From NCBI RefSeq assembly GCF_018977255.1, contig NW_024704755.1, positions 744,001-808,000 on the forward strand: a stretch of 64,000 bases of DNA, written 5' to 3'. Shown piece by piece: positions 19,941 to 34,823 of the stretch. Each line of letters begins with the position of its first letter. The first letter of the stretch is position 1. Source of the DNA: Callorhinchus milii. Its lineage: Eukaryota. A program made the position numbers and the translations under genes. A model generated the notes under the pieces. It was not told the origin of the DNA, did no database searches, and saw only the letters and a program-made list of their open reading frames with translations.

Positions 19941-21891
19941 CTACGTGGCCTCAGCTTTGGGAGCTCGCCGCTGGTTGAAAGTGATGAGTTTGTAGGTCAA
20001 GTAAGCGTCAGCGAAGTAAAGACAAATGGCCGCAAATCCACAGACCTGGCATTAGACAGCGATAACAATGTAATAATATAATAATAATAATAATAATAAT
20101 AATCCTTGCATTTGATATAGCGCTTTTCACGTCGGGAGGACGTCCCAAAGCGCTTCACAGAATAGACTGTAAAGTGAATTGACTGTATATTTGTGGGCGA
20201 ACGCGGCAGCCAATTGCGCACAGCAATGTCCCACAAACAGTCGTAGATTGAAAATGACCAATTTTATTATTGTTTTTGGTTTTGGAGGGATTATTATTAG
20301 GCTCTGTGTGGAGTAAGGAAACTTGCCCGAGGTTTCGCCCTCTGCCTGGAATTGAACTCAGGTCTCTCACTTGCAAAGCGAGTGCTCTAACCACTGAGCT
20401 ACAGGACTCCACACTATAATAATCCTCGCATTTGATACAGCGCCTCATCACGTCTTCAAGACGTCTCAAAACACTTAACAGAATATACTTTAAAGTGAGT
20501 TGACTGTATATTGTGTGGACGAAATGCAGCAGGTCCTCCTCTCATACTGCCACCCCCCCCATCCCTCTCTCGCTGGTAGACTGCCCCCCCCCCCCTTTGC
20601 TGTCTCACTCACCGAGCCAGTCACGGCGCCCGCCGTTGTCTTGCTGACCAAAGCCGCGATGCAGATGATCAGGAGGAAGAGAGCAGCGAGCAGGGAGCTC
20701 AGTACATCCTGCGGGAGAGTCAGGGTTAGTGTTTTCTCTCACATTGATTTCAAGATCTGATTTCCATCAGTAGCTTTCCTCAGTGCACGGTGGGGGCTCT
20801 TGCGGAGGGCAGGTACTCACAGTGAGAGGCCAGAAGATGAGGGTGAGGGAGGAGTGGAGCTTCAGCAGGTAGAGCAGGTAGAAGGCCAGCGTGATGAGCA
20901 GCTCCAGCAGCGGGATGGCCACGTACGCCCCCGAGAAACAGGTCGCGAAGCTGACAAACGCCACAAATCCTACAGTCTGGGGAAACAATCAGTCTTCATT
21001 CACCCTCCCAGCTCCCATTCCCAGCTCCCGTTCCCAGCTCCCATTCCCAGCTCCCATTCCCAGCTCCCATTCCCAGCTCCCATCCATCCACTCCCAAAGT
21101 CCTGGGAATTGGGATACAGTCAACCCACCATTACCAAAGGGGCACACACCAAACCTGGGCACAAGTGGCTTCCAGTAGGGGGCGATTGTTGGGCCTCTCG
21201 GGCACTGACATCTGACACTGACAGTATTCCCCCCCCTCCCCCACAACCCTGCCCCATATTTCCCACCCCTCACTTCCCCTACAAACACCCCCATCCGATC
21301 CTCCACCCTCACCCCCTCCTGAAGAAATTCTGCCTTAGAACTGAGAGTTGGTGCCCCCAAAACAACGTTTACTCAAACCAGAAACCAATGTGTTCCTTTT
21401 ACTCCTTTGCTATTGTACACCACACCCCCCCACACCCCCTCCCTCCCCCACACCCCTCCCTCCCCCACACCTCCCCCACACCCCCCTCCCCCACCCCCTC
21501 CCTCCCCCACCCCCTCCCTCCCCCACCCCCTCCCTCCCCCACCCCCTCCCTCCCCCACACCTCCCCCACCCCCCTCCCCTCCCTCCCCCCACACCCCCCA
21601 CCCCCCCCCTCCCTCCCCCCCTCGCCCCCACCCCCCCTCCCCTCCACCCCCTCCCTCCCCCACACCTCCCCCACAACCCCCTCCCCCACCCCCTCCCACC
21701 CCCCACCCCCCACGCCTCCCCCACACCCCCCTTCGCCCCCATACCCCCTCTCCCCCCCCACACCTCCCCCTCTCCCTCCCCACACCCCTCTCCCCCCCCT
21801 CCCCTCCACCCCCTCCCCCCCCCCTCATTACCAGCTCTGAAAGCTTCAGCACTCCCCGGGTTGACTTGGCAAAGGCCAAGTTGAGCTCCAT
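19941..21891 (-). CDS. CKLF: Chemokine-like factor, MARVEL protein (4 exons, 138 aa)
   Basis: Exons 21891-21832, 20976-20821, 20708-20613, 20045-19941, all phase 0 GT-AG. Translation MELNLAFAKSTRGVLKLSEL/TVGF...LLYLLKLHSSLTLIFWPLT/DVLSSL...GS/VCGF...ADAYLTYKLITFN resembles human CKLF (LLYVLRL..WLFWPLLD..ADGALIYRKLLFN). It is head-to-head with TK2 as in human. Minus-strand AATAAA at 19573-19578. Confidence 0.85.
20085..20412 (-). mobile_element. Young tRNA-head SINE with L2-type tail and (TTA)n end (family A)
   Basis: Head with A box TAGCTCAGTGG and B box GAGTTCAATTCC. Near-identical copies at 23080-23375, 34016-34185, 40865-41077, 45716-45931 and 55887-56210. Older relatives at 1570-1910, 10180-10555, 13960-14255, 14410-14740, 30200-30450, 44898-45358, 53160-53405 and 62790-63085. 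Confidence 0.9.
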
Positions 21892-22289
21892 TCCGCCCCC
21901 GGTGTGTGCGGAGCTGTGGCGGTGCTGTGCTGTGGGGTTGGGGTGAAGCCGCTCCTCTCTGTGGTCCTCTCCCTCACAGTCTCTCTCCTCACTTCCTGCT
22001 CCAGGCGCTGGTGTCCGGGTGATGGTAACTGATGGTGTCGCTGCCCCTCCTGATCGGTGACTTCACTTCACACCTCACACAAACCACTCCGGGTTTACCT
22101 CGTCCCCACCAAAGGAAGTTGGGTTCTGCATTGCATCAGTTACCTGTGCGGAGCAGCGCCCCCACCCCGGGCGGCCCCCAGTAACAGCCCTCCATCCCCA
22201 CTGCCTCCTCCCTCTCCTCCTTCAGGGCCGTCTCAAGGCCTTTCCCTTTAACCTTCAGCCCTCAGCTCCGCTCTCGACTCTCTACCCCC

Positions 22290-26800: not shown

Positions 26801-28780
26801 GGAGGGGTGGGGGGGGGAACGATGCGCTGTGTAACCTGGTTGCTTTGCCGACAGGGTTTAATGTATGAGGACGTGTCTCGCTGGGCCATCACCTTGCAGA
26901 GCTACGTACAGCTCACCATGTTAGAGCAGCACACACTGCCACTGGTAAGTGAGCAAACTGCTGGCCGGTTGTTCCAGGGGTTCATATTCCCTTCCAAAAA
27001 AAAATTGATAATATGGTCATTCAATCCATTGTTTGTGGGACGCTGCTGGGCACAATTAGCTGCCGCGTTTCGCCCACAAAATATACAGTCACTACACTTT
27101 ATAATATATCCTGTGAAGCGCTTTGAGACGTCTCAGCGATGTGATGAGGCGTTCTATCAAATGCAACAATCATTATATATAATATAAATGTGTGGAATTA
27201 TTACCCAGGAGTTGCCCAACTCTGTGTCTCTCACAGACGGCACCGATCAGGATGATGGAGCGCTCCATCTACAGCGCCAAGTACATCTTCGTGGAGAATC
27301 ACTACCGCAGGCAAGGATGGGGCTGGGGTTGGGGGGCGTGTGTGTGTGCGTAACACTGTGGGGGGGTGGTCTGTGACACGAGATGTGTGTATGTCAGGGT
27401 GCATGTGTCGGGATGTGTAGAGCCAGGGGTGTGCGAGGGGGGGTTTGGTGTAACTTGGGTAAGGGTATGTATGATGTAGGGTGGGGGGGGGGTGACAAGT
27501 GGGGAGGGGTTTGTGTGATGGGGTGGGGGCACTGAGCTTGGAGTGTGTGTGGGCCCTGATGACTGTGCTGTGATTACAGCTGCCGGATGCCGGCTGTGGA
27601 CTATGAGGTGCTGAGCCAGTGGTTTCAGTGGATCATCAGTAACGTGAAGATCCAGATCGATCTAATTGGTGAGATCACTGCTGGGGGGTGGGGGGGGTCA
27701 CTCCCGGGAGGGTGAGGTCACTCCGGGGCAGGGTTACTTGTACGTGAAATGTGAACAGGAGTAACAAGGTGTTACGGGCTGTGCAATTCGTGGTGTGCGT
27801 GTACATGTACAGTATCGGTGTGTGTGTACATGTACAGTATGTAAATGTGTGTACATGTACAGTATATGTATGTGTACAGTATCTGTGTGTACAGTATCTG
27901 TATGTATGTGTACTTTATCTTTGTGTATGTACAGTATTGTGTGCGTGTGTACAGCATCTGTGTGCCTGTGTACGTGTACAGTGTGCGTGTGTACGTGTAC
28001 AGTGTGCGAGTGTGTACATGCACAGTGTGCAGGTGTACATGTACAATGTGTGTGTAACTGGAGCTCTCTTCCCCACAGTGTACCTACAGACATCACCTGA
28101 GGCTTGCTATAAGCGACTGCGGAATCGGTGCCGGGAGGAGGAGCAGATTGTTCCTCTGGTAAGAAGTGGGAGGATGTCTGGGGGGCATCGCTCCGCACCT
28201 CTCTGCCTGTTGCCAACACGGCCCCCTGCTCTCCGCTCCCCTTGTTGCTTTGCCCTCGTCTGCCTTGTTCCCATTGTGTATAATAATAATACTTGCATTG
28301 GATACAGCGCCTTATCACGTCGTTGAGATATCTCAAAGCGCTTCACAGAATACATTGTAAAGTGAATTGACTGTATATTTTGTGGGTGAAACTGTATAAC
28401 CGTGCAGTGAGTGTGACATACTCTCTCACTCTCTCTCTATCTCTCTCTCAGGAGTACCTGGTGGCTATCCATCAGCTGTACGAGGACTGGCTGATTAACC
28501 ACACACTGTTCACAATCCCGGCCCCGGTCCTTGTGAGTTACTTTATCATCAGAATCTTCCATTTCATTCACAACCCAAACCAACAACAATTTACAATTAT
28601 ATAGCTTGACTTGAGGAGGATGGGGTGTCTATGGGGGCTGTTAATTGTCCCCATTTCCCTCCCCCTCTCCCTCAGGTGATCCCGGCCGACCACGACCTTC
28701 AGAAGATGCTGAAACGGTACGAGAAGAACTGGGAACGGATCCTGTCACCGAGTCGAGGGCCGGTCACGTGTAGCCAGTAA
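23847..28780 (+). CDS. TK2: Thymidine kinase 2, mitochondrial (10 exons, 287 aa)
   Basis: Exons 23847-24021, 25357-25397, 26209-26283, 26550-26603, 26855-26944, 27237-27310, 27580-27668, 28079-28158, 28452-28532, 28676-28780. P-loop [22 protein letters not shown] and lid [10 protein letters not shown] motifs are present. The Arg-rich N-terminus suits mitochondrial targeting. Intron 6 starts with GC. Confidence 0.96.
24278..24445. repeat. CATAGCCT(C)n tandem repeat in TK2 intron 1
   Basis: About nine visible copies. Confidence 0.9.
24497..25258 (+). mobile_element. CR1-clade LINE fragment (reverse transcriptase region, degenerate)
   Basis: Peptides [42 protein letters not shown] and [16 protein letters not shown] are typical of CR1 ORF2. 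CR1 3' ends also occur at ~1090-1250, 35600-35770, 58170-58315, 59270-59500 and 60270-60480. Confidence 0.9.
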
Positions 28781-29856: not shown

Positions 29857-30484
29857 CGTCATTTTAATATTTTTTCAGCATTGGGAGAGGGAAGATGATT
29901 GATTATATACATATATATACACACACAATGTGAACAGTCTCGCTTGTTCATTCTGTTAGTTTAACCCAGTCTGGCTGGAGTTTGCAAGCCCTATAATTCC
30001 AGTGGGTCTCAGCCTGTCACGCTGTTTCTCCCCGCCCACCAGTTCATCAAAATTCAAAAACTGTTGTAAATTCCTGAACGCAGTCTTACCTGAGAGGCCG
30101 GTTCCTTCTCAGGGCTTTGGGAAAACCGGCGTCCGAGTTAAGTTGGGAATTTTTTGACATTTGATAATAATAATAATAATCCTTGCTTTTGATGTAAGAT
30201 AATAATAATCCTTGCATTTGATATAGCGCTTTTCACGTCTTCTAGACGTCCCAAAGCGATTCACAGAATATACTGTAAAGTGAATTGACTGTGTATTTTG
30301 TTACTGGTTTATTACCCCCCGGAAAAGGCTGCTTACTGCTCGGAGTGTGGAGTAAGGAAACTTGCCTAAGGCTTCGCCCGCCCGGGAATCAAACCCGTGC
30401 CCTCTTGCTTGCGAGGTGAGCGCTCTAACCATTAACCTACGGGACTCCACGTCGGCTCGCTGTGTGCCGGGTCAGCGTCCGGGG

Positions 30485-32357
30485 TCAGTGCCTGGGGTCT
30501 GGGCTGAGCTGGGCGCAGTGAGGGGTCTCGGTGGCTTTGCTGATCAGCACGAATGGATCCTCGCTGTCCGTCACCATCACCTCGGTGCGAAGCCAGTTGT
30601 TTTCATGGAGGGCCCGGCACATGTTCGCTGCTATGTCCCCACCACCGGGAGGTACTGATGAGCAGTCGGCCTGCAGGCTGAGTGGGGGGATGTAGTAGGA
30701 CTGCGGCGGCTCCCTAACTTCCTGCCCGGTGCCGGCCTGAGCCGAGCTGCCCGGCAAATCACAGGCGTCGGCAAGCAGGGCCACGGTGATTGGGCACACG
30801 CTGAGCTCCGTGATTGGCCAAACGCCATGCTCGGCAATTGGGCACACACTGTCCTCGGGGCCTGTGCCCGCGTGGTGTGGGTGGGCCGGCTCCGGCCCCA
30901 GGGTCTCGGCGATGGGGTAGGGAAGTCTCTCCCCACCCCCCAGCCACACCTCATTCGGGTATCGGCGGGCACTGCTGTGCCAGGCCTCCATGCTCTCCCG
31001 CTCCCGGCTCCCGAGGTGCAGCTCAGGCACTGTTACTGTTGGGTCGGGTGAGTCGGGGAATGAGGAGAGAGAGCGGGGCCCCTCGGGGAGCCGGGGCTCT
31101 GGGGTTACCGGGACGGTGTGTTTTGGCCTGGCCTCGGCTGCGATGTGGATGTCGGGGTATTCTGTGTACAGGTCGATGCTGTCCGAGAGGCTGGCTGGGA
31201 GCTCGGGGTGAGAGTCAGGCTGGGATGCCGGAGGGTCAGTGAGAGGGAGGGGGGCGTCAGAGTCAAGGGGAGGCTGGTCGTTGTCGGAGCCCCCTCCCTG
31301 GGGAGGCCCCCTCCCCTCGCCCCAGCTCAGGGGCAGTTGGCTCCGGGTCTGGATGACGGACAGGCAGCTGGAGCCTCCCACTCGCTCCAGGATTTCCCAC
31401 AGAACCTCGCACTCGCTCCGGGCCAGCAGGAACTCGAACGCCAGGTGCCCCAGGTCATCCACGTCCGGCGGCTGCCGCATCACGTACTCCTGGGAATCCC
31501 GCCGGGAGTATCCCAGCTTCTCTAGCATTCCCTGCATTCCATCCGCCGGGAACGCCGGCTGGAGGAAGTAGACGAAGGTACCAGTGAAGGTCTGGGGAAG
31601 AGAGAGAGAAACAGCGTTCAGTGCGCCTTCGGGCAGGCAGGAAATGGTTAATATACCCAATGTACTTCATGCCCTGGCACCTCCCTACCTCCCACCTGCT
31701 TACTCCCCACTTCAGCACCCGCTTGACTGGCTCCAGCCTCCTGCTTGTCCCTTGGCCCCTCCACTCCACCATCGGCAGCTGTGCTTTCAGCCACTACACC
31801 CCGAAACTTTGGAACTCTCTCCCCAATCCCTCTGCCTTGCTCCTTCCTTCCCCTTTTACAGATCACGACTGAAGACCATCCTCTCTGACCGTAATTAGTC
31901 ACCTCACCCCAGCTTGGAGTTAGCCTCTGCCACTGTTAAGCGCTTCAAGACGCTGCCCAGCGTGAAGGGTGCTGTGCACATAAATGCAGGCTGTTGTTGT
32001 CAGTAGAGGGACGGTCTTGTCACTAACCTTTAACGATCGGATCTCCTTCCTCCAGGGACAGAGGAACAGATTGACTGCGATCAACTCCAGGACCTCGAAA
32101 GCCTTTCCCAGAGCTCGGAAAGGATTCTCTCCTGGTCGCGGATCCACGCCTTTCACAAAGTCCCGGGCGATGCGGTAAAAGTCCAGGTGTGTGAAGCGGG
32201 AAGTGCCGGGGTGATAGGGAGTCTCCAGCACCTCCCTCACCTCCCTGCTCACCTCCTCCCCTGCCCAGGGAGACAGCTCCCCCGACAGATAGCTCTGCTG
32301 GTAAAACGCCCAGAAGTTTTGGTAAACTTTCTCTGCCACACAACTGGTGAGCTCCAT
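30485..32357 (-). CDS. SPATA2-family PUB-like domain protein, extra paralogue (2 coding exons, 478 aa)
   Basis: Exons 32357-32028 and 31591-30485, joined by a phase-0 GT-AG intron. Junction AFEVLELIAVNLFLCPWRKEIRSLK/TFTGTFVYFL...LGY...LAFEFLLARSECE matches the SPATA2/SPATA2L PUB domain, and the intron position agrees with recalled SPATA2. The frame is fully open. Confidence 0.9.
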
Positions 32358-32474
32358 CTCTTGGGCTCTGGCTCTCCCTCTCCCCCCCTCCGCTCTGTGC
32401 TGTGAACTCTCTCGCTGAGCGGAGCTGAGGTTCCTGCTCTATGTCTGCGTGTCTGCGTGAAGACAGGGCCTCAG

Positions 32475-32540
32475 GACAGAGGAAGCAGGAAGGTTGTGTT
32501 GTCTTTATGGCCAATCACGGTGAACGGAAAGTGAAAGCGT
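32475..32540 (-). promoter_or_regulatory. Putative promoter of the SPATA2-like gene with IRF/ISRE element, CCAAT box and ETS cores
   Basis: GAAAGTGAAAGC at 32527-32538, CCAAT at 32511-32515, CATAAA on the minus strand at ~32504-32509, and GGAAG cores at ~32481-32492. All lie 120-180 bp upstream of the ATG. Confidence 0.55.
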
Positions 32541-34823
32541 TCAGTCTCTCCCTCTCGTCTCTGTGGTTAGAATCAAGCCCAGTAACATACAGCCCCGACT
32601 GTGCCCTCGGGGTAACAACTGGAACACAGCACGGGGTTTGTGTGTGTGTGTGTGTGGGGGGGGGGGTGTAGGGGGATTTGACTGGTAAAGATTGATTTAC
32701 ACACGTGTTTTGAAAGCTTTGCAGTAATTGCTGCCCAGTGCAGTCAGCGACTGTTTTTTAAGCTCTTTCCCTCACACACTGCCAGAATATATATACAGTA
32801 CATAGGAACACAGGAACAGGAGGAGGCCATTCAGCCCCTCGAGCCTGTTCCGTCATTTTATAAGATCATGGCCTCAATACCTTGACTTCACAAACATCTA
32901 TCCACCTCAGTCTTGAAAATGTTAACGGATCCAGCAGCCGCAGCCTTTTATCCGAGGGTGGGGGCAATGGTTGAGGTGGCAGCGTGTGTGTGTGTGTGAG
33001 TGTGTGTGTGTGAGTGTGTGGAGTTGTTTTCTGGGACCTCGGGAGAAACTCCCTTCTCTTTTCCAATATCGTCACGGGATTTATTTAACCTTCGCTGGAC
33101 AGGCACAGGCTGCCGCTCAGCACTACCAGGCTCTACACTGACATTGGGCTTGACTGCCTTCCCTGTTCCCCTCCCACTTCTCTTCTTGCTCTGCGTTCCC
33201 CTAACGCTGACTGCGCTGTTAGCGCAGGGCACTGTAATACCTCTGCCTTGCGAGCATGGGGCGCTGCGCTCCCAGCTCCAGCACATCACCGGTCCAGACT
33301 GGGTTCATGCTGATGCTTTGTCCTTCCATTCCATCCACGTTTGCATCCCGTTTACCTAATTCCAAAGAGTATTAGCTGCAGGATTAGCAAGAGCCAAGGC
33401 TAAGGGACACCATAGTGTGTGTTGGGGGTAATTGCTGGAGTCTAACCATCTAAAACCACATATCGAACCACGTATTGATGTCACGGTCTGGGAAGCTTTC
33501 CCGTTGCTTGTCCAGCTGGGACCGCCCTACCTGTTAGGGCTTTGGCTTGCAGGGTTAACAGGAGCTGAGCGGGAGGATTCCCTGCCCCCAGTGACTGCAT
33601 TCATTCGTACTTTCTTCTCATTCTCTCTTATTCCTGTCCTCTCTGATTCTCTTCCCTCTCTCCACCCCCCCCACCCCCACTTCCCCACACCTTTTTTTTC
33701 CAGTTCCGGAAATAGTCAAACTGAACCACACAGAGCGTCAGATTCTGAAATTGAGATTATTTTTATTAAATAAAAACAAACAGACGATTTAAAAGACCAG
33801 ATGTGTGAGTGACGGTGACAAAGTGTGGGTGTAAATATCACCCCCGAATCTCACCGTGTGTCCAGCCCAGTGTGGAGCTGATCGGGGAGAGGAGGCGAGG
33901 CTGGACAGTGAGAGACAGACTCACTGTCATCCCCCAACCGGCCAACCTCGCCATCAAACAGTGCTCGGGTGAGGGGGTGTGGGCAGGAATAATAATAGTA
34001 ATAATCCTTGCATTTAATAATCCTTGCATTTGATATAGCGCTTTTCACGTCGGGAGGACGTCCCAAAGCGCTTCACAGAATAGACTGTAAAGTGAATTGA
34101 CTGTATATTTGTGGGCGAACGCGGCAGCCAATTGCGCACAGCAATGTCCCACAAACAGCCGTAGGTTGAGTGACCACATTTAAATTTTTTTAAAATTTGA
34201 TAAAGTGCCTGACCATTGGAACGTCTCAAAGCGCTTCACAGAATATACTGTAAAGTGGATTGTCTGTGTATTTTGTGGCGAAACGTGGGAGCCAATTGGG
34301 CACAGCAGTGTCCCCACATACAGCCGTAGGTTGAGTGACCACATTTAAATTTTTTTTTGAAGGGTTATTAACCCTGGAAAGCGATCCACCAATTGACTTA
34401 CTGCTGGGTAAACAGAGGTGTGTGGAGTAAGGAAACTTGCCTAAGGTTTCGCCCCGCCTGGGAATCAAACCCAGGTCCTCTCGCTTACGAGGCGAGCGCT
34501 CTAACCACTACACTACGGCACTGCACGTACGAGTTATCGGGATCTGTTGAGTTCAGCAACAAACTGAGCAAAAACAATAACATTCTAAAAAAATGTACAA
34601 TCATCAGAGAAACACAGCCATTAATCCAACACACTTCCCGTCTAGCTGCCAGCATCAGCGATTGTGATGAGGTCATTTTTTTATATAGGTGTCCCCGGTC
34701 TGGTCTACAAAATATGGTCACCCTACTTTCCCAGCCCCGCCCTACTTTCTCAGCCCCACCCTACTTTCCCAGGCTCAGCCCTTTTCTGGGTTCCCGGAAT
34801 TCTGTGCTGGGAAGGGTGATGTC

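Follow-up and report, generated by a model that had tools for sequence, protein, structure and literature searches.

A probable third member of the SPATA2 family directly downstream of BEAN1 in the elephant shark

The DNA analysed here, called the window in the following, is a stretch of 64,000 nucleotides from the elephant shark Callorhinchus milii (contig NW_024704755.1, positions 744,001 to 808,000), with coordinates counted from its first letter. The locus comprises, in this order, a TK2-type kinase gene on the plus strand and, all on the minus strand, the gene under study, BEAN1 and a cadherin gene (Table 1). The gene under study consists of two coding exons (32357..32028 and 31591..30485), which together encode a protein of 478 amino acids. 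This protein belongs to the family of SPATA2, the adaptor by which the deubiquitinase CYLD is recruited to LUBAC, the complex that assembles linear ubiquitin chains, in TNF and NOD2 signalling (PMC5031558). An intact two-exon reading frame of this length had been proposed by a sequence-only reading of the window, and the sequence itself, collinear matches to a protein family and to a known structure, as well as spliced contigs agree with this proposal.

Table 1. Positions of the gene, its transcript-derived parts, the motifs of its product and the neighbouring genes in the window
Feature	Position	Strand	Evidence or remark
Coding exon 1	32028..32357	-	110 codons, residues 1-110, Met to ...EIRSLK; PF21388 and 5LJM matches, spliced contigs
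Intron	31592..32027	-	436 bases, phase 0, GT..AG; skipped by one contig each in X1, X2, X3
Coding exon 2	30485..31591	-	368 codons plus stop 30485-30487, residues 111-478; PF21388 and 5LJM matches
5' untranslated stretch	32358..32467	-	X1 record 6 up to 32411, X2 record 13 up to 32467
3' untranslated stretch	30401..30484	-	X1 record 6 from 30401, X2 record 11 from 30402
Alternative upstream exon	33241..33400	-	GT donor 33240-33239; joined to AG acceptor 32297 (codon 21); one contig
Second half of PUB-like domain	31322..31591	-	residues 111-200; model confidence and 5LJM match
SIDLYTEYPDI	31148..31180	-	SPATA2-type PUB-interacting motif core Asp-Leu-Tyr-Thr (250-253), together with Tyr255 (invariant in the clade) and Asp257 (nearly so)
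LPYPIAET	30902..30925	-	chimaera/shark form of clade motif L-x-Y-P-[IV]-E-E-T
REPPQSYYIPP	30683..30715	-	clade signature REPPxSxYIPP
Acidic-hydrophobic C-terminal stretch WLRTEVMVTDSEDPFVLISK	30536..30595	-	modelled beta hairpin; matches the clade's ...[YF]V[ILVM][IV] end
TK2-type deoxynucleoside kinase exons	26860..28780	+	PF01712 dNK, profile 44-73, 72-98, 126-153, in order; converge on the gene's 3' end
BEAN1-like coding exons	35944-35762, 35321-35169, 34991-34827	-	upstream of the gene, same strand
Cadherin exons	42-48.6 kb	-	beyond BEAN1

Exon 1 ends in the donor AAG|gttagt, with the GT at 32027-32026, and exon 2 begins behind the acceptor ...ttccccag|ACC. The products of the two exons were searched separately, without joining them beforehand. 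Each of them exceeds the cut-off of 27 bits of the Pfam family PF21388 (SPATA2_PUB-like), exon 1 alone with 39.2 bits over profile positions 44-98 and exon 2 alone with 52.1 bits over positions 99-183. The structure of the human SPATA2 PUB domain (5LJM) is likewise collinear with both exons, chain residues 55-108 being followed by 109-193. Since the matches to PF21388 and to 5LJM abut, the splice junction is placed to the codon by homology. The peptides quoted in the sequence-only reading (VNLFLCPWRKEIRSLK / TFTGTFVY and LAFEFLLARSECE) are all found in the product.

Transcript evidence was drawn from assembled contigs, not reads, of X1, X2 and X3, three small runs that belong to one study and whose RNA label is a guess. 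These runs contain 0.57-0.73 of the sampled words, close to the fraction of the stretch that is exonic; in larger runs, from another study, the value is 0.79-0.88. When the contigs of four runs (X1, X2, X3 and X8) were aligned to positions 29900-33400, X1, X2 and X3 each yielded one contig that omits exactly 31592..32027. The ends of the omitted segment, CT..AC, correspond to GT..AG in minus-strand orientation. Run X8, from another study, crosses the intron unbroken and behaves like DNA. The proposed junction is therefore present, to the base, in intron-less contigs of three RNA-like runs. At the 5' side the spliced contigs extend 54 bases (X1 record 6) and 110 bases (X2 record 13) beyond the ATG, and at the 3' side contigs reach 84 bases past the stop codon, where they end in a tRNA-like repeat. 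Repeats of this tRNA-like type, resembling short interspersed elements, flank the gene and also sit in its intron, and contigs break there. Very high contig depth was seen in all four runs at 30120-30450, 31655-31890 and 32710-33175.

The same protein already exists as a prediction. A word-index search with exon 2 gave one match among 6235 candidates, which is the protein itself (P0001), 100% identical from end to end; the record is UniRef A0A4W3JUY3 (Callorhinchus milii, predicted, 478 residues). A second record, XP_042196314.1 of NCBI (P0002), has 500 residues, rests on different splice sites and bears the name 'spermatogenesis-associated protein 2-like protein'. Its splicing (31660-32033, minus strand) combines an upstream acceptor with a donor that lies within exon 1, a few bases from its end. 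This model was rejected, as 24 residues replace 'LK' in the middle of the PUB-like domain and break the collinearity with Pfam and 5LJM; among the contig joints listed, none supports it. In conclusion, the elephant-shark gene is real, intact and spliced in the way that the sequence-only reading had proposed.

The N-terminal part of the protein adopts, by prediction, the fold of the SPATA2 PUB domain. In an AlphaFold2 model calculated from a 150-row alignment, residues 1-200 reach values of about 79-98 in the predicted local distance difference test (pLDDT), and the best structural match found by Foldseek is 5LJM (E 1.8e-9, template modelling score 0.79 by target, root-mean-square deviation 2.4 over 190 columns), followed by PUB domains of HOIP. 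The full protein scores 109.6 bits against PF21388. Fold match and family scores of the single exons thus bear out the assignment of the first 200 or so residues to a SPATA2-type PUB-like domain.

Previously, it was shown that CYLD binding by SPATA2 is weakened by the exchanges Y114A, T115N and T115A, and that N98A and T94K have little effect; SPATA2L was found to bind CYLD as well (Elliott et al. 2016, PMC5031558). In a 45-row alignment of the family, the equivalents of Thr115 and Gly116 are kept in all 24 rows of the clade to which the window protein belongs (the third clade, see below), whereas the position of Thr115 is occupied by Ser in 11 of 11 SPATA2L rows. At the position of Tyr114 a Phe is found in the window protein, in 20 of the 24 third-clade rows and in 6 of 8 SPATA2 rows. 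The sequence-only reading had listed the Asn98 and Thr115-Gly116 equivalents as retained, which is correct; it had also singled out the replacement of Tyr114 by Phe as a distinguishing feature, and this part does not stand, Phe being the commoner residue in SPATA2 itself. Since Phe occurs in 6 of 8 SPATA2 rows it does not signal divergence, and the wall that faces CYLD looks like that of SPATA2. The PUB-like domain of the third paralogue may accordingly be pictured as binding CYLD in the manner of SPATA2 and SPATA2L; judged by the invariant Thr115-Gly116 pair and by Phe or Tyr at the Tyr114 position, the chances of this are about even.

In order to place the protein within its family, relatives were collected by an exhaustive HMMER search (213 proteins at E<=0.001). 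For a quick tree of the PUB domain, 141 of 150 proteins were aligned (at least 250 residues), and the 135 rows with at least 130 PUB residues were kept. This tree resolves three groups, namely SPATA2L together with two arthropod-like rows, SPATA2, and a third group which contains the window protein and amounts to 75 of the 135 rows, with a support of 93 in the Shimodaira-Hasegawa-like approximate likelihood ratio test. A careful tree, for which 45 rows were chosen by hand (24, 11, 8 and 2 per group) and which was rooted on Limulus, gave supports of 98/97 for the third clade and 99/98 for SPATA2L. The window protein groups with those of the sharks Heptranchias and Mustelus (99/98), the internal branching of the third clade agrees with the species tree, and the clade as a whole appears as the sister of SPATA2 (94/87). 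The view that the PUB-like domain is nearer to SPATA2 than to SPATA2L is in line with this sister position and with the Thr at the Thr115 position.

The trees bear directly on the possibility that the gene is nothing but the elephant-shark orthologue of SPATA2L, moved next to TK2 and BEAN1. Such an identity is suggested by the NCBI name of XP_042196314.1 and by the same name given to seven mammal relatives, and moreover the gene and the true SPATA2L apparently lie on one scaffold of 18,121,395 bases. However, C. milii possesses a separate SPATA2L (P0072), which falls into the SPATA2L clade (99/98) together with the SPATA2L proteins of sharks. In approximately unbiased (AU) tests, uniting the chimaera and shark proteins with SPATA2L was rejected (p 0.006), as was uniting them with SPATA2 (p 0.019). 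The groupings for these tests followed the sequence-only reading, which had named nesting within the SPATA2 or SPATA2L clade, in a species lacking that gene at its usual locus, as evidence for a mere translocation; two shark rows were added to the window row after the quick tree. A separate clade and the presence of P0072 were found instead. The protein also reads 'TGTFVY' where SPATA2L has 'SGxYVH' with its Ser (11 of 11 rows), and tail motifs of the third clade, described below, are absent from SPATA2L rows. Identity with SPATA2L is thus refuted by the tree, the AU test and the species' own SPATA2L, and retains next to no probability.

Coexistence of paralogues is seen in other species as well: the third gene occurs together with SPATA2L (P0069/P0160) in Latimeria and together with SPATA2 in the frog Pristimantis. 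Two members of the third clade carry the zebrafish identifier si:ch211-189a15.5 as their name (Heptranchias perlo XP_067854271.1 and Latimeria chalumnae XP_006003979.1); other members come from Mustelus (a LOC record), a caecilian, newts, frogs, a gecko, the tuatara, sturgeons, Megalops, Centroberyx and many mammals. No bird was among the names looked up, which is not evidence of absence. Taken together, the careful tree at 98/97, the AU tests and the separate SPATA2L of C. milii sustain the claim of a distinct paralogue, and the window gene is very probably the C. milii orthologue of an ancient third member of the family that is neither SPATA2 nor SPATA2L.

The records of the third paralogue and of SPATA2L give equal scaffold sizes in four species: C. 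milii (18,121,395; P0002/P0072), Heptranchias (66,547,297; P0003/P0214), Mustelus (152,903,374; P0004/P0218) and Latimeria (188,107,785; P0005/P0160). The two genes thus probably share a chromosome in these species. This is odd for a simple origin by whole-genome duplication, since in the tree it is SPATA2 that forms a pair with the third clade.

Behind residue 200 the pLDDT is mostly below 50, and the tail is predicted to be disordered. A pattern scan for CxxC...CxxC...CxxC found no match in the window protein; among the 135 tree rows this pattern occurs in 12, eight of them in the SPATA2 clade. Pfam reported no zinc finger in the nine proteins scanned, a result that is uninformative because two SPATA2 rows likewise showed only PF21388. 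Low pLDDT and the missing pattern agree with the disordered tail without Cys-rich zinc-finger end that had been described from the sequence. In the sharks P0003 and P0004, CxxC pairs follow REPPxSFYIPP and a final CNRC lies within the C-terminal 90 residues, all of which are absent from the chimaera protein; they may represent the remnant of a zinc-binding C-terminus comparable to those of SPATA2 and shark SPATA2L.

The tail nevertheless carries short conserved elements. All four motifs of the clade, Y-[PS]-D-[LI], the YPxEET-type motif, REPPxSxYIPP and the [YF]V[ILVM][IV] end, are found in the window protein. A 26-row alignment of the clade shows Y255 to be invariant and D257, P322, E339, E404, P405, P406, Y410, P412 and P413 to be conserved at 90% or more. 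The REPPxSxYIPP-type pattern occurs in 39 of the 135 tree rows, every one of which belongs to the third clade. At the C-terminus a hairpin is modelled (WLRTEVMV...FVLISK, strands 443-448 and 457-462) with pLDDT values of 62-69. A TRAF-type reading of 'YPIEET' was dropped, as chimaera and sharks read 'YPIAET'.

One of the tail segments overlaps with a motif of known function. The PUB-interacting motif (PIM) of SPATA2 is Asp336-Leu-Tyr-Thr339, and the exchanges Y338A and Y338F largely abolished HOIP binding (PMC5031558). The window protein contains an exact Asp-Leu-Tyr-Thr. In a scan of the triplet at this position in 102 clade rows, D-[LI]-Y is kept as DLY in three rows (the chimaera and two sharks) and as DIY in two (one of them a sturgeon), to which the coelacanth is added with a DLY that is evident from the alignment, the pattern having hit elsewhere. 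The position reads [DE]-F-[LIMV] in 51 tetrapod rows and E-[MIL]-[QRH] in 38 teleost-type rows; of the remaining rows, four have other triplets and three gave no match. Since the tyrosine is replaced in most of the clade and Y338F largely abolished HOIP binding in SPATA2, docking to LUBAC is not the conserved job of the clade, and the conserved core at this place is Y-[PS]-D-[LI] and not the PIM. In cartilaginous fishes the exact Asp-Leu-Tyr-Thr could dock the protein onto the PUB domain of HOIP, to which the SPATA2 peptide binds with about 300 nM; for the chimaera protein itself such binding is rather doubtful.

These findings also lend some weight to a different view of the paralogue, according to which it works apart from CYLD and LUBAC with other partners, the DLYT of cartilaginous fishes being an ancestral leftover. 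The PIM tyrosine is absent in 93 of the 102 rows, present in 6 and without match in 3, the strongest conservation lies in clade motifs that have no counterpart in SPATA2, and the inability of SPATA2L to substitute for SPATA2 at TNFR1 indicates that paralogues differ in use (PMC5031558). However, both characterised paralogues bind CYLD, and the lower-wall residues relevant to CYLD are kept. A role entirely apart from CYLD and LUBAC is thus an unlikely, if serious, alternative. The reading favoured here is that the third clade comprises CYLD-type adaptors with partners of their own, in which docking to LUBAC would be possible in cartilaginous fishes and not clade-wide. The Y-P/S-D-L/I, YPxEET and REPPxSxYIPP motifs, together with the C-terminal hairpin, would recruit these partners. 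For the window protein, a role as CYLD-LUBAC adaptor is plausible.

The distribution of the gene in mammals was approached from an armadillo protein (P0054) which lies inside the third clade. At E<=1e-5, with the 8000 candidates sharing most words being scored, 37 relatives were found, covering 26 named mammal species and 2 newts. The mammals include xenarthrans, afrotherians, carnivores, rhinoceros, horses, pig, ruminants, hippopotamus, cetaceans and one partial gibbon model. The proposed loss in mammals, which was part of the sequence-only reading, is contradicted by these species. No rodent, rabbit, bat or primate other than the gibbon appeared among the relatives from the 8000 top word-sharing candidates, which is a lead and not a finding. 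Of the 37 relatives, seven bear the name SPATA2L and five that of BEAN1 or a BEAN1 isoform; in four, PF21388 occurs together with the BEAN1 family PF28336.

Fused gene models of BEAN1 and the third paralogue occur in mammals in P0182, P0200, P0207, P0210 and P0211. The fusions arise either by read-through of the spacer (P0182) or by splicing of BEAN1 exons to the exon-2 acceptor (P0210, P0211); in a gibbon model named 'BEAN1 isoform X2', the BEAN1 exons are followed by only the exon-2 half of the PUB-like domain. The intron of P0210 and P0211 and that of the unspliced P0213 lies at the identical codon (...RSLK | T[FY]TG). On account of such models, a position of the gene beside BEAN1 can be inferred for mammals, too.

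In the window, the position directly downstream of BEAN1 is observed. Three BEAN1-like open reading frames, for which Pfam gave no match and which were compared with the armadillo fusion P0182 instead, match residues 79-115, 196-233 and 241-260 of its BEAN1 part in order, and the gene lies about 2.5 kb downstream of the last of them. On the other side, the matches of the kinase exons to the deoxynucleoside kinase (dNK) family are each below threshold when taken singly and were counted because they are collinear. The kinase is taken to be TK2 and not another family member, following the sequence-only reading. With collinear dNK exons on the plus strand and BEAN1-like exons on the minus strand flanking it, the gene lies between a TK2-type kinase gene and BEAN1, in agreement with that reading. 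Further away, the window contains GC-rich low-complexity tracts at 4700-6000, 16800-19300 and 21400-21900, which translate into poly-Pro/Gly/Cys-Val, as well as several runs of N upstream of the TK2-type exons; long open reading frames in the GC-rich tracts are composition artefacts.

The proximity to BEAN1 raises the question whether the gene consists merely of 3' exons of a BEAN1 read-through unit, encoding a BEAN1-PUB fusion or forming a non-coding BEAN1 tail. It lies on the same strand at the short distance given above, five of the 37 relatives are BEAN1-named and four of the 37 unite both Pfam families, and P0210 and P0211 join BEAN1 to the exon-2 acceptor. In human, too, 3' rapid amplification of cDNA ends revealed additional BEAN1 exons downstream toward TK2, in an interval which is known for the repeat insertion of spinocerebellar ataxia type 31 (SCA31) (PMC9968654). 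Moreover, one contig of 1950 letters (X3 record 19) carries a joint from 33241 to 32297, within exon 1, and has 597 letters beyond the aligned stretch, toward the 3' end of BEAN1; it may stem from BEAN1 read-through or from a second promoter. However, when the upstream exon of this contig is read by eye in the frame leading on into the gene, a TGA is found 15 codons ahead of the junction. The X3 variant is therefore either untranslated or N-terminally truncating and offers no fusion frame by which BEAN1 could be read into the PUB-like domain. X1 record 6 and X2 record 13, by contrast, contain no upstream exon and end 54 and 110 bases before the ATG. All rows of the 26-row alignment share the start Met, the records of sharks, coelacanth, amphibians and fishes stand alone, and the fused models may be merges made by the gene predictor, P0182 reading through intergenic DNA. 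A mere appendage of BEAN1 is thus an improbable description of the gene.

A bolder variant combines both genes. BEAN1 and the third paralogue could form a conserved functional pair, read-through producing a membrane-anchored BEAN1-PUB protein in some lineages, with the ape gene broken and its exon 2 surviving as a 'downstream BEAN1 exon'. Such a fusion would link PPxY-type motifs of BEAN1, presumed from the name of the gene to bind NEDD4, to a PUB-like module with CYLD as its possible partner. If this speculative and on the whole unlikely scenario were true, the family would have been overlooked as man and mouse have no intact copy, and it could best be studied in pig, cattle, dog-like carnivores, horse and zebrafish.

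Returning to the favoured reading as a whole, several observations weigh against it. The runs X1-X3 are only presumed to be RNA and all come from a single study. The support for the sister position to SPATA2 is only moderate (94/87), the window protein has Phe at the Tyr114 position, and other residues stand in place of the PIM tyrosine in tetrapods ([DE]-F-L) and in teleosts (E-M-[QR]). The chimaera protein, moreover, sits on a long branch (0.65, those of the sharks being 0.15 and 0.31), falls short of the shark proteins by 159 residues and is devoid of their C-terminal CxxC pairs. From the latter points it could be suspected that the C. milii copy is decaying, that is, a relaxed or dying gene that looks intact by chance. 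The terminal branch of 0.65, an identity of only 49-50% to sharks in the PUB-like domain, large deletions in the linker and the loss of the shark Cys pairs are compatible with this. However, a frame of 478 codons is open over a correctly spliced intron, spliced contigs exist in three runs, the PUB model is confident, and every clade motif as well as all invariant residues of the 26-row alignment are kept (an invariance which includes the window row itself). Decay is therefore very improbable.

The explanation that best accounts for the whole is that a third SPATA2-family paralogue arose before the split of cartilaginous and bony vertebrates and was kept directly downstream of BEAN1, facing the 3' end of TK2; a probability of roughly 0.7 is assigned to it. 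The product may act as a CYLD-type adaptor. If this holds, an unstudied player as old as jawed vertebrates is added to CYLD biology, kept with docking-type motifs of its own in sharks, fishes, amphibians, reptiles and many mammals, including farm and companion-animal lineages. That the usual model species apparently have no intact copy would account for its absence from the literature, and pathway maps drawn from man and mouse are perhaps incomplete for other vertebrates. Its place beside BEAN1, in the interval that carries the SCA31 insertion in man, adds interest. No paper was found that names si:ch211-189a15.5, nor, judged by titles and the opening parts of abstracts, one on a third SPATA2 paralogue, and Atlas entries give the family name and nothing more. 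Across species the gene has been annotated inconsistently as SPATA2L, BEAN1 isoform, WIPF1-like or 'uncharacterized'. The expectation that orthologues might already be annotated in fish is borne out by uncharacterised records in fishes and elsewhere. The clade is thus an uncharacterised member group of a known family, for which records exist and annotation is wide but inconsistent.

Comparison with the known members of the family delineates the position of the window protein. With SPATA2 it shares the PUB-like fold of 5LJM, the equivalents of Asn98, Thr115 and Gly116 together with the 'TFTGxFVY' segment, and an Asp-Leu-Tyr-Thr motif inside a disordered tail. It differs from SPATA2 by a Pfam score of 110 bits compared with 255-335 bits for true SPATA2, by a Leu instead of Thr94 and by the missing CxxC-rich C-terminus, whereas SPATA2 is devoid of the YPxEET-type motif, of REPPxSxYIPP and of the hydrophobic C-terminal hairpin. 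SPATA2L has the same family domain, often the same name from annotation pipelines and apparently the same scaffold in C. milii, two sharks and the coelacanth; it is set apart by 'SGxYVH' (11 of 11 rows) in place of the 'TGTFVY' of the window protein and by the absence of the clade's tail motifs. The closest resemblance exists to the si:ch211-189a15.5 group and the 'uncharacterized LOC...' records, which belong to the same clade and have the same domain order and the four tail motifs. Unlike most members of this group, which comprise 517-637 residues, the chimaera protein has only 478, and chimaera and sharks read 'YPIAET' where the group has 'YPIEET'. Finally, chimaera, sharks, coelacanth and sturgeon-like fishes keep D-[LI]-Y at the PIM position, whereas tetrapods and teleosts have changed it.

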